Counted from the stretch's first letter, positions 11,500 to 63,570 are shown. The stretch: DNA of 64,000 bases from Octopus sinensis (GCF_006345805.1 NC_043009.1:38316001-38380000); one strand, 5' to 3'. The notes: a model not told the origin generated them from the sequence alone. Made by a program: numbers and translations.

Positions 11500-11930
11500 A
11501 GAGGGAACAAGTCGATTACATCGATCCCAGTGGTCAATTTATTTTTATTTTATCGATCCCGAGAGGACGAAAAGCAAAGTCAACTATGGCGGACTTTGAA
11601 CTCAGAATTTAAAGACGGACGAAATACCTATTTCTTTATTACCCACAAGGGGCTAAACACAGAGAGGACAAACAAGGACAGACAAACGGATTAAGTCGAT
11701 TATATCGACCCCAGTGCATGACTGGTACTTATTTAATCGACCCCGAAAGGATGAAAGGCAAAGTCGACCTCGGCGGAATTTGAACTCAGAACGTAGCGGC
11801 AGACGAAATACATATTTGTTAACTACCCACAAGGGGCTAAACACAGAGGAGACAAACAAGGACAGACAAACGGATTAAGTCGATTACGTCTACCCCAGTG
11901 TGTAACTGGTACTTAATTTATAGACACAGG
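11500..11930 (-). mobile_element. Tandem tRNA-SINE array (two tail-B units followed by an older tail-A unit)
   Basis: On the minus strand, tail B (...TTTAGCCCCTTGTGGGTAATAAAGAAATA) joins directly to GGTATTTCGTC at 11628 and to TGTATTTCGTC at ~11812. Confidence 0.85.
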
Positions 11931-12389
11931 TACATAACACGCACACACACACACACACACGCACGCACACATACAAACACACATACATATGTATTTATTC
12001 GACGGGCTTCTTTCAGTTTCCGTTTACCAAATCCACTCACAACGCTTTAGTCATATCGTGGTTACAGTCGAAGACATTTGCCCCAGGTACCACGCAGTAG
12101 GACTGAACTTGGAAGCATGTGGTTGGGAAACAAGATCTTAACAGGCAGTGGTTCCGACAGCTCGCCGCCTTAAATAAAGTCATAACGAACAGAATGTGAA
12201 CATGAGACTGAAAAGCCCTTTGGACAAAAAACGTTGAAGGCAGGCTACCTTCAAGTTTCTCTAGCCAAAAGTCATTTTTTAAACCATCTACTTACATGCT
12301 ATTATTCATAGCTTTATTCGCTTCGATATTCACCGCTCGTAGACAGAATTCCCGTTCTCTCGAAATTTATACATTCTTATGACGTCTAC

Positions 12390-12715
12390 TAATGGTCCAG
12401 TGGTTAGGGCAGCGGACTCGCGGCCGGAGGATCGCGGTTTCGATTCCCAAACCGGGCGTTGTGTGTGTTTATTGAGCGAAAACACCGAAAAGCTCCACGA
12501 CGCTCCGGCAGGGGGTGGGAGGTGGCAACCTCTGTTGTACTCTTTCACCCCAATTTTCTCTCATTCTCTCTTCCTGTTTCTTGAGTAACGCTGCGATGGA
12601 CTAGCGTCCCGTTCACCTGGGGGGGGGGGGGGCACACACATAGGCCACAGAAACCGGGAAACCGGGCCTATGAGCCTGGATAGGCTTGAAAAGGGCGTAT
12701 AAATAAATAAAAATA
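12390..12715 (+). mobile_element. tRNA-derived SINE, second family
   Basis: Head TGGTCCAGTGGTTAGGGC...GGTTTCGATTCCC (A/B boxes). Tail GAAACCGGGAAACCGGGCCTATGAGCC...AAATAAATAAA. The same head recurs at 33410. Confidence 0.8.
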
Positions 12716-12773
12716 AATATGACGTGTTTGGAATTGGGTTGCAAGATTCTTTATATGAGTTCGTGTGTTGAAG

Positions 12774-12929
12774 CATATTCTGTTGTGTCTGGGGAGAGTC
12801 ATTTTCTTTTTGTGCCGGTAAAATTTCCACTTATTTCTTATTTTTATTTTCCTAAAATTTTCGTTGGGTCTTGCAACCTTTTCAATAGTCAAGAAAATGA
12901 CTCTCCTCGGACACAACATAATAAATATG
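12774..12929. repeat. 28-bp inverted repeat plus an interleaved 10-bp inverted repeat
   Basis: 12781-12808 and 12891-12918 are complementary with two G-T pairs. GGTTGCAAGA (12737-12746) is complementary to TCTTGCAACC (12869-12878). Confidence 0.85.
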
Positions 12930-59844: not shown

Positions 59845-60300
59845 AAAATCTTGCTTCCCAACCATATGGTTTCCAGTTCAGTCCCACTGTGTGACATCTT
59901 GGGCAAGTGTCTTCTACGATAGCCTCGGGCCGACCAAAGCCTTGTGAGTGGATTTGGTAGAGGGAAACCTAAAAAAGCCTGTCATATATATATGTATGCA
60001 TGCATGTATATATATGTGTATATATATATATATATATATATATATATATATATATATAATATATATATATATATATATATACACACACACACACATATAT
60101 ATATTTGTATGTATTTGTGTCTGTGTCTGTTCCACTACCATCATTTGTCGACCGATCTTGGTGTGTTTACAATCCCGTAGCTTAGCGGTTCCAGGCTTAC
60201 AAAGAATAAGTCCAGGCGTCGATTTCTTCGACCAAAAGGCGGTGCTCCAGCATGGCCACAGTCAGAATGACTGAAACAAGTAAAAGAATAAAAGAATATA
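59845..60300 (+). mobile_element. CORE-like tRNA SINE in the spacer of the inverted duplication
   Basis: CTTGCTTCCCAACCATATGG, ending GACTGAAACAAGTAAAAGAATAAAAGAATA. Confidence 0.85.
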
Positions 60301-60938
60301 TAAATATATCCTTTAGATAGATAGATAGATAGATAGATAGATAGATAGATTGATAGATAGATAGATAGATAGATAGATATTACCCGAAATATTAGCGCCA
60401 AGCAGTGTTTATGGATATGCAAAGTTCAAGTTAGTTGAAATATTTGTGTCATATTTGAACTGCTAAAGGCAAATTCACTGTAGTTTCCGCAGAGAGAAAT
60501 TTTCCCTTATGGTAAAAAGGTGTGAAAACACCCTATCTGTTCACTGTCGCCATCACTCAAGATTCCCAGACGTCGATGTTCCTAGCTCGTTGGCTTTTAT
60601 CAATGGGAATTACCTAGGAGATGTAACTCTGAACAGATCTTTTAACGCGACAGCTTTATGTAAAATATAGTCAACAACGTTGACTGAGTTGCGCTAGTAT
60701 ATATATATATATATATATATATATATATATATATAATATATATATATATATATATATATATGTATGTATGTGTATATATATATATATATGTATGTATGTA
60801 TATATATGTATATATATGTGTGTATATATATATATATGTATATATATATATATATGTATATATGTATATATATATATATGTATATATATATATATATATA
60901 TATATATATGTATATATATATATATTTATACATATATA

Positions 60939-61612
60939 CATACATGCATACATATATATACATACATACATATACATATGCATACAGGGCACAGGACGTC
61001 ACCAACAGTAAGCAACATGAAAATTCTCACAAGGAATTGGTCAGCCAAGAGCTATAGTTGAAGGTACTTGTTCAAGGTACTGCGTTGTAAAACTGAACGC
61101 GAAAGCGCATAATTGCAAAAGAAGCTGCTTAACCACACACCCATGCCTGCACCTTGTAAACACGTTTCACTTTGTGGGGAGCACTTCGAGCAGTTACATA
61201 AAATGCCGTCTCGTCTTCGAACCGTAAAGCTGTCTTTCTGTCAATCAATCAAGCTAAAACAAAGAGAAATTATGGAACTAGGAGGAGTCGCTTGAGTAGA
61301 GGTGAAAGGTATTGTTTTTTTTTGGTAAACAATAGTGAATTGGTTTCTGCGTATTTAGTTTTTTCGTGTTTGAGTTTTGTTTTTTAATATATGGTTTCCA
61401 TTTACTTCTATTCTTTTTCTTCTCTCATTGTTTTTATTCCGCTCAATTTTTTTCGCTCCCCACCGCAGTCCTTCAAAATTATTACAAATAAGCACAGCAT
61501 ATTCAACACACCCTATACAAGCAACCGTTTTCAACGAATTATTCAAATTTTTCGAATTCACCAAATTATCCATTTTTAACAAGTTCACAGCCAGCCGTTA
61601 CAATCGAATATC
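60939..61612. repeat. Right arm of the 674-bp inverted duplication
   Basis: Reverse complement of 59168-59841. Confidence 0.95.
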
Positions 61613-62974
61613 GCCTTCGCCGTGAACAGATATTAATCTTCTCCCTTCGCTCCTTTGTGCCACATGAGCTCAACTCCCCTCCTCTCTTCATCTGACACAT
61701 CGCTTCACACCTACCTATCTCCTCTCTTCATCAATACCTCCCTCATGTATGTGTATGTGCGTGTGTGTCAGTGTGTGTTCTTAATTATACGATCTACATA
61801 TCCTATAATTCAACATAGAAGTGATGCCACGTTTGACATATATGTTCCTTCATTACATTACGAATGACAACAAAGCAGATATTTATACATGCGTTAATGT
61901 ATGACAGCACTAACTGCTCATCATAGCTGAAAAAAGCCTAAATCTTCAAATGTACTGATTTGTGTGAACATATTTCTGCTCTGTTGCATTTCCTTTTTCT
62001 CTTAAACTATGGCTTACCCAGGATATATATTATATATTGTGTAGAGAACGAGGTCGTGTATTTAATATCCGTATATTTTACAACACAAAGCAAACAGCAA
62101 TTTATTTTGTTTACTCATCACTTTTAAAAGAAAATATCAACTTCCTATCTTCAAGACTTTTAAAGATCCTACTTCACACCTTCAAATAAGTTGGGAAACA
62201 CTCATGAAAATGCAACATAAAGGCAGCATCCAAATTTGCAGGAAATGGTTATTTTAAAGGGTGGAAAAAATATTGTTGTGATGAAGAATATTATGATATA
62301 TTATATATATACATATGCACAGACAAACACACACACACACACACACACATACACGCGTACACAAACACACAAACAAATTTAACGGTTTAACGGGCGGTAG
62401 ATGGGGTCGGATTCGCGCCAAAATTTACACTGGGTGGTAAAATGGGGTGGGCAATGGTGTGAGGAGGGTTGCAAGTCGCTCGGGGCTACCGTTTGGTTGC
62501 CATGGTGAGGAATATGGGAAAGATTGAGTTTTATGGGATAGACAGGTTCCGCTGTTTGAATAATGGTGGCTTTTCGTTTTGCTGCAAGGGTTAGAGGTGG
62601 TTATCTTTAATCTAATCTATAAAAGGAAGAAGGCGAACGTTGATACAAATTGGATTTTTATGCAAAAGGGGTCTAAATGGGGTTGGAAGGGGATTAAAAT
62701 TTACAGGAGGGAGTAACTTAAGGTGAGAAATTGATTGGGAAACGTTTTGGGGCGCTACAGATGTTGCTTTGCTGTGAAAACGGGGATTTTATTGATTTTG
62801 GGGGACACTTTGGGGTCTAGATTGGACACCTTTTGCCCGATTTCAATCAAATTTTCAACATGGTAAAGTGTAAGCGGATTTAAGCGCAGAAAATGGGTTC
62901 GAAATTTTGACAATTAAGGCTGGATTTAAGAAACAGAAAGGAAGCAACAGAAAGTAATAGCCACACCCTCACTC

Positions 62975-63570
62975 GTTTGTCTGTCCTTGTTTGTCCCCTC
63001 TATGTTTAGCCCCTTGTGGCAATAAAGAAATAAGAAACGTTAGCACGCCGGGCGAAATGCATAGCGGTATTTCGTCTGCCGCTACGTTGTGAGTTCAAAT
63101 TCCGCCGAGGTCGACTTTGCCTGTCATCCTTTCGGGGTCGATAAATTAAGTACCAGTTACGCCATGGGGTCGATATAATCGACCTAATCTGTTTGTCTGT
63201 CCTTGTTTGTCCTCTCTGTGTTTAGTCCCTTATAGGTAGTAAAGAAATAGGTATTTCGTCTGCCGCTACGTTCTGAGTTCAAATTCCGCCGAGGTTGACT
63301 TTGCCTTTCATCCTTTCGGGGGTCGATTAAATAAGTACCAGTTACGTACTGGGGTCGATATAATCGATCTAATCCGTTTGCCTGTCCTTGTTTGTATGCT
63401 CTGTGTTTAGCCACTTGTGGGCAGTAAGGAAATAAGAATCGTTAGCACGTCAGATAACATGCTTAGCGGTATTTCTTCCGCCACTTTACGATTTTCATTC
63501 CTTAGTGATCAATAAAAATAAGAAACTACCCAAGTACTTGGGTCGATATAATCGACATGTCCCCTTCCAC
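62975..63570 (+). mobile_element. Tandem tRNA-SINE array (truncated tail B, B, B, older A)
   Basis: Tail-B junctions to AGAAACGTTAGC (63033), GGTATTTCGTC (63250) and AGAATCGTTAGC (63435). Confidence 0.9.

Follow-up and report, generated by a model that had tools for sequence, protein, structure and literature searches.

Head-to-tail chains of a tRNA-like SINE in Octopus sinensis have recurrent joints at two fixed positions and may have been joined as RNA or cDNA

Reverse transcriptases of the R2 and L1 types switch templates in vitro as well as in vivo, and this gives rise to chimeras of the U6-L1 type. Arrays built from short interspersed nuclear elements (SINEs) have been described in other animals. 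The tandem-like SINE arrays of bivalves have the form TSD1-(SINE)n-TSD1 (TSD, target-site duplication), with an equal truncation of the heads and a complete last tail (PMC11481361), and in squamate reptiles SINE-derived satellites have been explained by duplication and unequal recombination (PMC10702118). For Octopus vulgaris, the passages of the repeat paper that match a term search give 11.6% SINEs and active long interspersed nuclear elements (LINEs) of the Dong-R4, CR1, L1-Tx1 and RTE groups, and these same passages do not mention the arrangement described here (PMC13282606). Here we describe a stretch of 64,000 nucleotides from Octopus sinensis (GCF_006345805.1 NC_043009.1:38316001-38380000), the whole of which is called “the window” and is numbered from its first letter. 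In it, one subfamily of a transfer RNA (tRNA)-like SINE, recognized by its tail (tail B), takes part in six short head-to-tail arrays whose joints fall almost always at the same two positions of the element.

The window has a guanine-cytosine content of ~35%, and microsatellites are very abundant. It is dominated by one tRNA-like SINE superfamily, with ~33 copies that have the head region, and ~8% of the window bases match a full-length tail-B query. In the numbering of this analysis, the head takes up positions 1-47 (GGCGGCGAGCTGGC AGAAACGTTAGCACGCCGGGCGAAATGCTTAGC) and the body positions 48 to ~167 (GGTATTTCG...GGTCGATATAATCGAC). Three alternative tails follow: A1 (..TTTCAGGCCTTGTGCCTATAGTAGAAAGGATTATT(n)), A2 (..GGCCTTGTGCCAAAATTTGAAACCAAT(AT)n), and B (TTAATCCGTTTGTCTGTCCTTGTTTGTCCYCTCTGTGTTTAGCCCCTTGTGGGTAGTAAAGAAATA, with the terminal bases ...CCTTGTGGGTAGTAAAGAAATA), the final ~30 nt of which can be aligned with the A1 end. 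An A-box-like TAGCACGCCGG (positions 23-33) and a B-box-like GAGTTCAAATTCC (positions 74-86) can be recognized by eye; ARAGORN and the Rfam tRNA model gave no match. A run of at least four T is the usual stop signal of RNA polymerase III, and the B consensus built here has zero such runs.

Tail-B ends were found by pattern searches and direct reading of the window. There are 14, at 24525, 24709, 26025, 40801, 40985, 53007, 57748, 63032, 63249, and 63434 on the + strand and at 11629, 11813, 14825, and 52413 on the - strand. Eight abut position 48/49 of another family unit (GGTATTTCG), and three abut position 15 (AGAAWCGTTAGC), where the sequence is agaa(a/t)cgttagc. One (copy h) lies antisense in the B-box of a relative and is followed by ggaatttgaaccca, and two (26025 and 57748) lie in non-family DNA. 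The table of joints thus agrees with the original prediction, which had counted the same 8, 3, 1, and 2. The joints at position 48/49 read ggtatttcg (five), tgtattt(c/t)g (two), or ggcatttct (one), and the joint base itself varies (G in six, T in two). All 11 family joints come directly after ..GAAATA, identical to the end of a solo copy, and at position 48 the tail end AAGAAATA runs into GGTATTTC. With the family at ~8% of the window, the chance that at least 11 of 14 ends fall at two given positions is ~1e-34, which bears out the claim that the joints are nonrandom, recurrent, and specific to one tail.

A BLAST search with the head only found copies starting at positions 1-6 (19 copies), 11 (one), 15 (four), 43 (one), and 48/49 (eight). 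A likely fourth position-15 joint lies at ~15046 (-), where unit b1 stands behind a tail fragment, X1, ending GGCAGTAAAGAA; this joint has an apparent 7-nt slippage deletion between two AAGAA repeats. In units e2, a3, c3, and f4, bases specific to the partner start 3-12 nt past the joint, and any overlap with the upstream RNA was therefore short. Joining, or recombination, has taken place many times at this very point. At the main joint, the first base, G48, opens the 3' arm of an inverted repeat of 12 bp (positions 32-43 and 48-59; GGGCGAAATGCT / TAGC loop / GGTATTTCGTCT); across 15 copies, 85% of its cells can pair, compared to 38-61% for shifted controls. There is no covariation among these 15 copies, RNAalifold does not predict the hairpin, and the repeat is treated here as a sequence feature and not as a proven structure. 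The mini-palindrome that had been noted at the main joint, GAAATA-GG-TATTTC, is present, and it comes about because the tail end AGAAATA mimics the 5' arm of this repeat.

The units of the six arrays (a to f) and the three solo tail-B copies (g, h, and i) are given below; tails called C variant carry ..CAGTAA...

11813-11925, - strand: a1, first in array a, a 5'-truncated tail-B unit starting at ~position 112-120, with a (TG)n tract upstream.
11629-11812, - strand: a2, tail-B unit from position 49 to the tail end; at the joint with a1, caaata meets tgtatttcg.
11459-11628, - strand: a3, last of array a, starting at position 48, with an A2-type tail (..gccaaaatttgaaactaatat); gaaata meets ggtatttcg.
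15047-15070, - strand: X1, orphan tail fragment (tttgtag tattgtaatGGCAGTAAAGAa) before b1, with a C-variant terminal motif and a probable position-15 joint.
14825-15046, - strand: b1, tail-B unit, aligned by BLAST from position 15.
14634-14824, - strand: b2, starting at position 49 (gaaata meets tgtattttg), with an A1 tail running into TATTGTAATAACAGTAAAGA, an 18/20 copy of the X1 motif.
14421-14633, - strand: b3, near full-length copy (start 2-3) with an A2 tail, immediately after the b2 tail.
24294-24525, + strand: c1, full-length tail-B unit with the subfamily marker gtacaacttacgc.
24526-24709, + strand: c2, tail-B unit starting at position 48, with the marker gtaccagttacgc and a C-variant tail (..ggaCAGTAAAGAAATA).
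24710-24916, + strand: c3, last of array c, starting at position 15 (agaatcgttagc), with an A2-type tail.
40739-40801, + strand: d1, B tail-only fragment (from ~position 169) abutting a (TA)n tract.
40802-40985, + strand: d2, tail-B unit starting at position 48.
40986-41151, + strand: d3, last of array d, starting at position 48, with a B-like body and an A1 tail (cut).
52777-53007, + strand: e1, full-length tail-B unit directly behind the tail of an older copy, H0; its 47-nt head is the B consensus.
53008-53182, + strand: e2, last of array e, starting at position 48 (ggcatttcttc), of the A1-old family; it has in common with H0 ccatcgag and the tail cctatattacgaag.
62974-63032, + strand: f1, B tail-only fragment (~position 173), C variant (..gtggCAATAAAGAAATA), joined to position 15 of f2.
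63033-63249, + strand: f2, tail-B unit starting at position 15, with the markers acgttGtgag and gatAaatTaag, also in solo copy i.
63250-63434, + strand: f3, tail-B unit starting at position 48, with a C-variant tail (..gggCAGTAAGGAAATA).
63435-63594, + strand: f4, last of array f, a degenerate copy that starts at position 15 (agaatcgttagc) and has lost the B-box region.
25800-26025, + strand: g, solo tail-B copy starting at position 6, with the 3' flank aatattat.
52413-52640, - strand: h, solo tail-B copy, antisense in the B-box of H0, with the TSD ggaatttgaaccca.
57519-57749, + strand: i, solo full-length tail-B copy with the 13-bp TSD gtataactttaaa; the target read GGTATAAC.

The two ends of the arrays are different in kind. 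Among the first units, c1 and e1 are full length and b1 runs from position 15 behind X1; a1, d1, and f1 are B units truncated at ~112, ~169, and ~173 that abut non-family DNA. Scattered truncation of this sort is what the 5' side of one LINE-type insertion ordinarily shows. Among the last units, a3 and c3 are A2, b2 and e2 are old-type A1, d3 has a B-like body and an A1 tail, and f4 is degenerate. It had been proposed that arrays often end in an older tail-A unit. A different tail (A1-type, A2-type, or degenerate) does close all six; that this unit is older is unsupported, and its divergence may equally be family diversity. Identity to the nearest neighbor in the window is 77-85% for the last units, with d3 as an exception at 94%, and 93-97.5% for the B units, a comparison by private substitutions and nearest neighbors in which age is inseparable from family diversity.

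Solo copies show what an ordinary insertion looks like. An element inserted by target priming leaves both target halves in place, with 13-15 bp of the target duplicated. Copy h has a perfect TSD of 14-15 bp (52399-52412 and 52641-52654), and both halves of H0 are present; copy i has perfect TSD copies at 57506-57518 and 57750-57762. No TSD was found around copy g. An A1 copy at 4596-4750 has a perfect TSD of 16-17 bp that begins ATTATT and overlaps its tail. The 13-15-bp duplications identify tail-B units as ordinary LINE-driven retroposons. Nested insertion is thus recognizable when it happens, and copy h serves as the control. The only related public sequence found, L001, is a metagenome contig of 543 bp from ENA that came up in a protein search with an antisense open reading frame (ORF) spanning the joint. 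On its reverse strand (~185-395), it has a full-length solo tail-B copy (tail ..gtgggtaataacgaaata), followed by aatatattaag and adjoining an unrelated antisense tRNA-like repeat; L001 is presumably host DNA in the metagenome. Exact tail scans of metagenome and viral contigs gave no match, nor did a full-text literature search for the SINE sequence.

The arrays do not look like copy h. Tail-B copies had been described as landing at fixed sites in older copies of their own family. The head-only BLAST search gave 12 copies with a start at position 15 or 48/49 and not one with an end at 14 or 47. In all 12 cases, then, the supposed host has no left half. Upstream of the first units of the six arrays, there is no TSD of host sequence (GGTATTTCG... 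or AGAAWCG...), and host halves on both sides of an insert are seen only for h in H0. Four of the six arrays open, next to non-family DNA, with a B unit 5'-truncated at random or with a tail fragment. In array e, the 47-nt head of e1 is pure B-type while e2, behind the joint, is from the H0-type family, a very different one; e1 thus did not get its head from a host. Plain sequence-directed insertion into older copies, in its simple form, is rejected for want of left halves and TSDs. Two other ideas also failed: H0 and e2 are far too different to be duplicates of one host within a long TSD, and the merged joints predicted from microhomology between tail and site (AGAAA, GAAAT) are not those observed.

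Neither do the arrays come from a single source. The marker gtacaacttaYgc is found in c1, e1, and h; gtaccagttacgc in a2, b1, c2, d2, f3, and g; and acgttGtgag with gatAaatTa in f2 and i, the latter marker also in a1. The B units are polymorphic in the tail too (CCCCTCT/CCTCTCT). Different subfamily markers thus occur inside single arrays (c1 vs. c2; f1, f2, and f3; a1 vs. a2; d1 vs. d2). The six arrays have six different compositions, and their flanks are unrelated, with only other dispersed repeats in common (67-85% identity). The pairs c2+c3 and f3+f4 agree for only 15 nt past the joint. Since the last units belong to different families (A1-old, A1-young, and A2) and these two pairs diverge, there was no single master and no segmental duplication; descent of all arrays from one multimeric master or one segmental duplication, which would have undone the original prediction, is not what the unrelated flanks and six compositions indicate. 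As a separate observation, d2 and d3 (40802-41104) are the sole neighboring pair with a common private change (aaattcTgccgagg), which may stem from gene conversion, from a source common to both, or from a CpG change that arose in parallel.

The choice of joint is tied to the tail that stands before it. A tail lies directly in front of 12/12 internal starts, compared to ~5/19 full-length starts (p ~1e-7), so the internal start goes with a tail and not with a free RNA end. Among the three mechanisms originally suggested, template jumping by the reverse transcriptase accordingly fits best, only not by way of freely processed RNA 5' ends. The C variant is present in all three tails joined to position 15 (24709, 63032, and 63434) and in X1; these three read GGACAGTAAAG, GG-CAATAAAG, and GGGCAGTAAGG. 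The other eleven B tails have T (Fisher p 0.003, or 0.0007 including X1). Four non-family flanks tell a similar story: h (GGAATTTG), i (AGTATAAC; target GGTATAAC), g (AATATTAT), and L001 (AATATATT) match GGTATTTC at 19/32 positions where 8.5 are expected (P ~1e-4, post hoc). From this likeness and the link to the tail variant, it would follow that the DNA 3' end priming the T variant is selected for ...AAATACC-3'-like sequence. The sequences point to a joint preference that travels with the lineage and to a choice that is sequence-guided and probably heritable.

One could consider, tentatively and as a reading that stops a little short of probable, that the arrays are head-to-tail SINE chains joined as RNA or complementary DNA (cDNA), not by the insertion of DNA copies. 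The way in which this may have happened, held just as tentatively, is template switching by the reverse transcriptase onto read-through tail-B RNAs, or the retrotransposition of whole chains. A B copy in front of another unit would be transcribed past its tail; with no run of at least four T in the B consensus, the B RNA should run into the next unit. It would then end with the first bases of that unit, GGUAUUU.. in the T lineage and AGAAWCG.. in the C lineage. The reverse transcriptase of the partner LINE would copy any family RNA, primed from the A-type tail of that RNA at a genomic nick. When the growing cDNA reached the complement of positions 48-54 (or 15-2x), it could pair with the 3' end of the B RNA and synthesis would continue there, adding a B unit before position 48 or 15. 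The switch could be repeated to give 2-3 B units, until synthesis stopped, either randomly or at the 5' end of the RNA; all of the chain would then go in as one insertion. Read-through RNAs of whole chains might also be retrotransposed from the terminal A-type tail and be 5'-truncated. The same 3' bases could pair with a genomic nick at a GGWATWW-like site, which would give solo copies such as h and i. Joining at the RNA or cDNA level would explain together the fixed joints, the short overlap, the B units always upstream, and the missing left halves. It would also cover the scattered 5' ends of the first units, the mixed subfamilies, the link between variant and site, and the flanks of the solo copies.

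Several points speak against joining at the RNA or cDNA level. The data are one 64-kb window and one 543-bp contig, L001. An unambiguous TSD surrounds none of the six whole chains. Arrays c, d, and f have no whole-chain TSD, and the candidates elsewhere are weak: attattatgaa / attattgcgaa around e1+e2 (9/11, attattRYgaa) and ctgtgt, 6 nt in a TG-rich context, around array a. A 20-nt repeat around b1+b2 was rejected as a chain TSD; it is probably a shared tail motif, because both of its copies follow A1-tail-like sequence and end in CAGTAAAGA. Four to five of the six last units are very divergent (77-85%), and f4 lacks its B-box; such units have the look of old DNA already resident at the site and less that of copies made from active RNAs. 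None of the six arrays ends in a B unit. The 3' extension of the B RNA by read-through is something we infer, and as T-run stops, GGTATTTC offers only three T and AGAAWCGTT none. Lastly, joining of this kind gives no origin for the very first joint.

A bolder reading, which we think unlikely, is that tail B marks a heritable self-targeting SINE lineage, in which an RNA lacking a terminator carries the bases of the next unit as an “address” and each chain becomes a new master. The carried bases would steer the next round of priming, or the next template switch, to that same position in other family RNAs or copies. Two such lineages would coexist in the window, the T variant being directed to position 48 and the C variant to position 15. 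For most of its spread, the B subfamily would then depend on retrotransposition that the tails of other subfamilies had primed.

Insertion of DNA copies can be rescued if it was targeted into resident copies of the same orientation, at GGTATTT or AGAAWCG, and the left half of the host annealed to the homologous cDNA, leaving a seamless merge. This we consider unlikely. Its best argument is that most of the last units look old and f4 lacks its B-box. The last units are also diverse, all arrays end in a non-B unit, and B shows a real sequence preference at genomic targets (h and i). Where the first unit has a head (c, e, and perhaps b), annealing would explain the absent left halves. It does not explain why the head of e1 is B-type and not of the type of e2, or why arrays a, d, and f have headless truncated starts and array b starts with X1, all four abutting non-family DNA. 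Unit c1 reads agaaAcg, whereas an A2-type host head would give agaaTcg, and the link between tail variant and site would call for two different enzymes.

The chains could also be composite (dimeric or trimeric) SINE families, with a few masters, each chain being born once, transcribed from the promoter of its first unit through to its A-type tail, and amplified; the arrays in the window would be ordinary and often 5'-truncated copies of several such masters. The lack of a run of at least four T in the B consensus would permit such transcription, the 5'-truncated chains (a, b, d, and f) resemble retrocopies of a long RNA, and joint inheritance would account both for the link between tail variant and site and for a tail before every internal start. 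As the whole explanation, it is quite unlikely: six arrays have six compositions, and c2+c3 and f3+f4 show no common composite, c3 and f4 agreeing for 15 nt only. The GGTATTT-like flanks of the solo copies are unexplained, and a joint-forming step is still required for each master. Amplification of composite masters is compatible with chaining or with insertion into resident copies, and it complements the other models without replacing them.

It is very improbable that the units were joined end to end, by template jumping or by RNA joining of the tRNA-ligase type, at 5' ends that had been cut after C14 and C47 at a hairpin loop or tRNA-like site. The joints are indeed blunt and end-to-end with a variable joint base, both cuts would come after GC and before R, and G48 opens the 3' arm of the inverted repeat with its 85% of pairable cells. 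Tail-free copies starting at 15/48, however, number 0/12, compared to ~3/4 of full-length copies. A B tail joined to position 1 is never seen, the link between tail variant and site is unexplained, and the hairpin has neither covariation nor an RNAalifold prediction behind it.

It is extremely improbable that a 184-bp unit, as the seed of a SINE-derived satellite, was multiplied in DNA by local tandem duplication or unequal crossing-over, or that a circular RNA of ~184 nt was reverse-transcribed by a rolling circle: Tandem Repeats Finder reports a 184-bp period in three arrays (11509-11920, 24343-24709, and 40738-41105) and bivalve arrays (PMC11481361) and squamate satellites (PMC10702118) are known, but neighbors are no more alike (89.6% identity within arrays vs. 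91.5% between arrays, which rules out both local tandem duplication and the copying of one RNA by a rolling circle), markers are common to solo copies elsewhere, the last units have different tails, and only d2 and d3 have a private change in common. No Rfam family, including the hammerhead ribozyme, reached the gathering score in the window or E<=10 in array c, and the circular, retrozyme-like copying that had been suggested is rejected, there being no ribozyme and the array units not being copies of one template.

The partner LINE would be predicted to share the 3' end ..CCTTGTG..TAGTAAAGA, and no LINE bearing tail B was found within the window. At 35380-35490 (+), a different element has a B-like tail (35449-35490; ..ttgttctatctgtgtgcagccctgtgtggctaataaagaaaca) and, after it, (TATC)n; this is either the partner LINE's 3' end or a tail-B relative of greater age. 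A small hairpin with the loop CTTGT is common to tails A1, A2, and B (e.g., 41112-41124, 24885-24897, and 24502-24514). Its stem is GGC/GCC in A1 and A2 and CCC/GGG in B, an apparent compensatory change, and this hairpin may be the element recognized by the reverse transcriptase. Another LINE 3' end, 5'-truncated and terminating in (AAT)n, lies at 54603-55330 (+). Its ORF has a reverse-transcriptase zinc-binding motif (Pfam zf-RVT, E=1e-4, weaker than the curated cut-off), and it has relatives in sea cucumber, anemones, corals, and a tunicate (53-68% identity). When a LINE C-terminal ORF was used for a protein search, the top matches, on ~1-kb contigs, were 82-91% identical. The LINE at 54603-55330 could be a partner for the A1 SINEs with (ATT/AAT)n tails, and a similar ORF is present at 15592-15969 (-).

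Other copies of the superfamily are arranged in their own ways. At 28777-29140 (+), there are two tandem copies: the first ends, tailless, at body position ~160 (..ggtcgatctaatat) and is followed by ttaaa, and the second is full-length and A1-tailed with a 23-nt internal deletion. Both carry the private variants gttgcatactgggg(t)tcgatctaat, and their joint differs in kind from the tail-B joints. An A1 tail at 16285-16361 (+) has an internal 38-bp tandem duplication (two copies, 97% identity) and then a perfect (TAT)21. The cluster at 52326-53650 (+) has four A-type copies (H0, e2, H2, and H3) and two B copies, five of the six in the same orientation and h antisense. Here, the distance from an A-type tail to position 1-3 of the next head is 0-20 nt, as it also is from b2 to b3 (14634). 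A1 copies seem to target the ATT-rich tails of earlier copies, since A1-type TSDs begin ATTATT (as in the 4596 copy).

SINEs take up much of octopus-type genomes (11.6% in O. vulgaris; PMC13282606). If the chains are single events, annotation of repeats over-counts and mis-dates insertions, and starts at position 48 or 15 would be mis-scored as independent truncated copies or nested insertions. The arrays may preserve, in their many informative joints, a record of template switching in nature. They could reveal the birth of dimeric or composite SINEs and how SINE pieces seed tandem repeats. They could also reveal whether read-through 3' bases give a nonautonomous element an inherited address.

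Among known systems, U6-L1 and R2 chimeras arise, as is proposed for these arrays, when one run of copying takes in two or more RNAs and the product integrates as a single insertion; as here, their upstream partner is attached by its exact 3' end, and the 5'-most partner is full length or randomly truncated. In them, the downstream cuts are scattered and the partners unrelated, whereas here there are two fixed cuts (15 and 48/49) in one superfamily, up to three repeated steps, and a joint type that tracks the tail variant. Retrozymes and hammerhead circular RNAs have tandem units of ~180 nt as well, but here there is no ribozyme and the units are not mutual copies. L1 3' transduction, like the read-through proposed here, carries flanking bases past a weak terminator; the carried bases in the octopus would be family sequence and would steer the next event into the family. 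Pairing between the 3' bases of an RNA and the priming DNA end, as we propose, has a parallel in target choice by pairing of the RNA 3' end at the nick. R2 in 28S ribosomal DNA and Tx1L in Tx1D also have a fixed 3' junction in a multicopy sequence, but they keep the target on both sides, and here the left half is never present.

The bivalve arrays come from a mollusc too and are built of a tRNA-derived SINE, which the octopus element probably is as well; their inner and last units share the same head truncation, and the last unit carries a complete, priming-competent tail, as here. They were defined as elements belonging to one family, with unequal recombination discussed as one possible origin, whereas the octopus arrays have mixed subfamilies, a different last tail, and no homogeneity (PMC11481361). 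In squamate satellites, part of a SINE likewise becomes a tandem unit, but those satellites are longer, and here there are 2-4 separately sourced units (PMC10702118). From known arrays and chimeras alike, the O. sinensis arrays differ in their two fixed joints, their heterogeneous units, the one subfamily that is always upstream, and a joint type linked to lineage.

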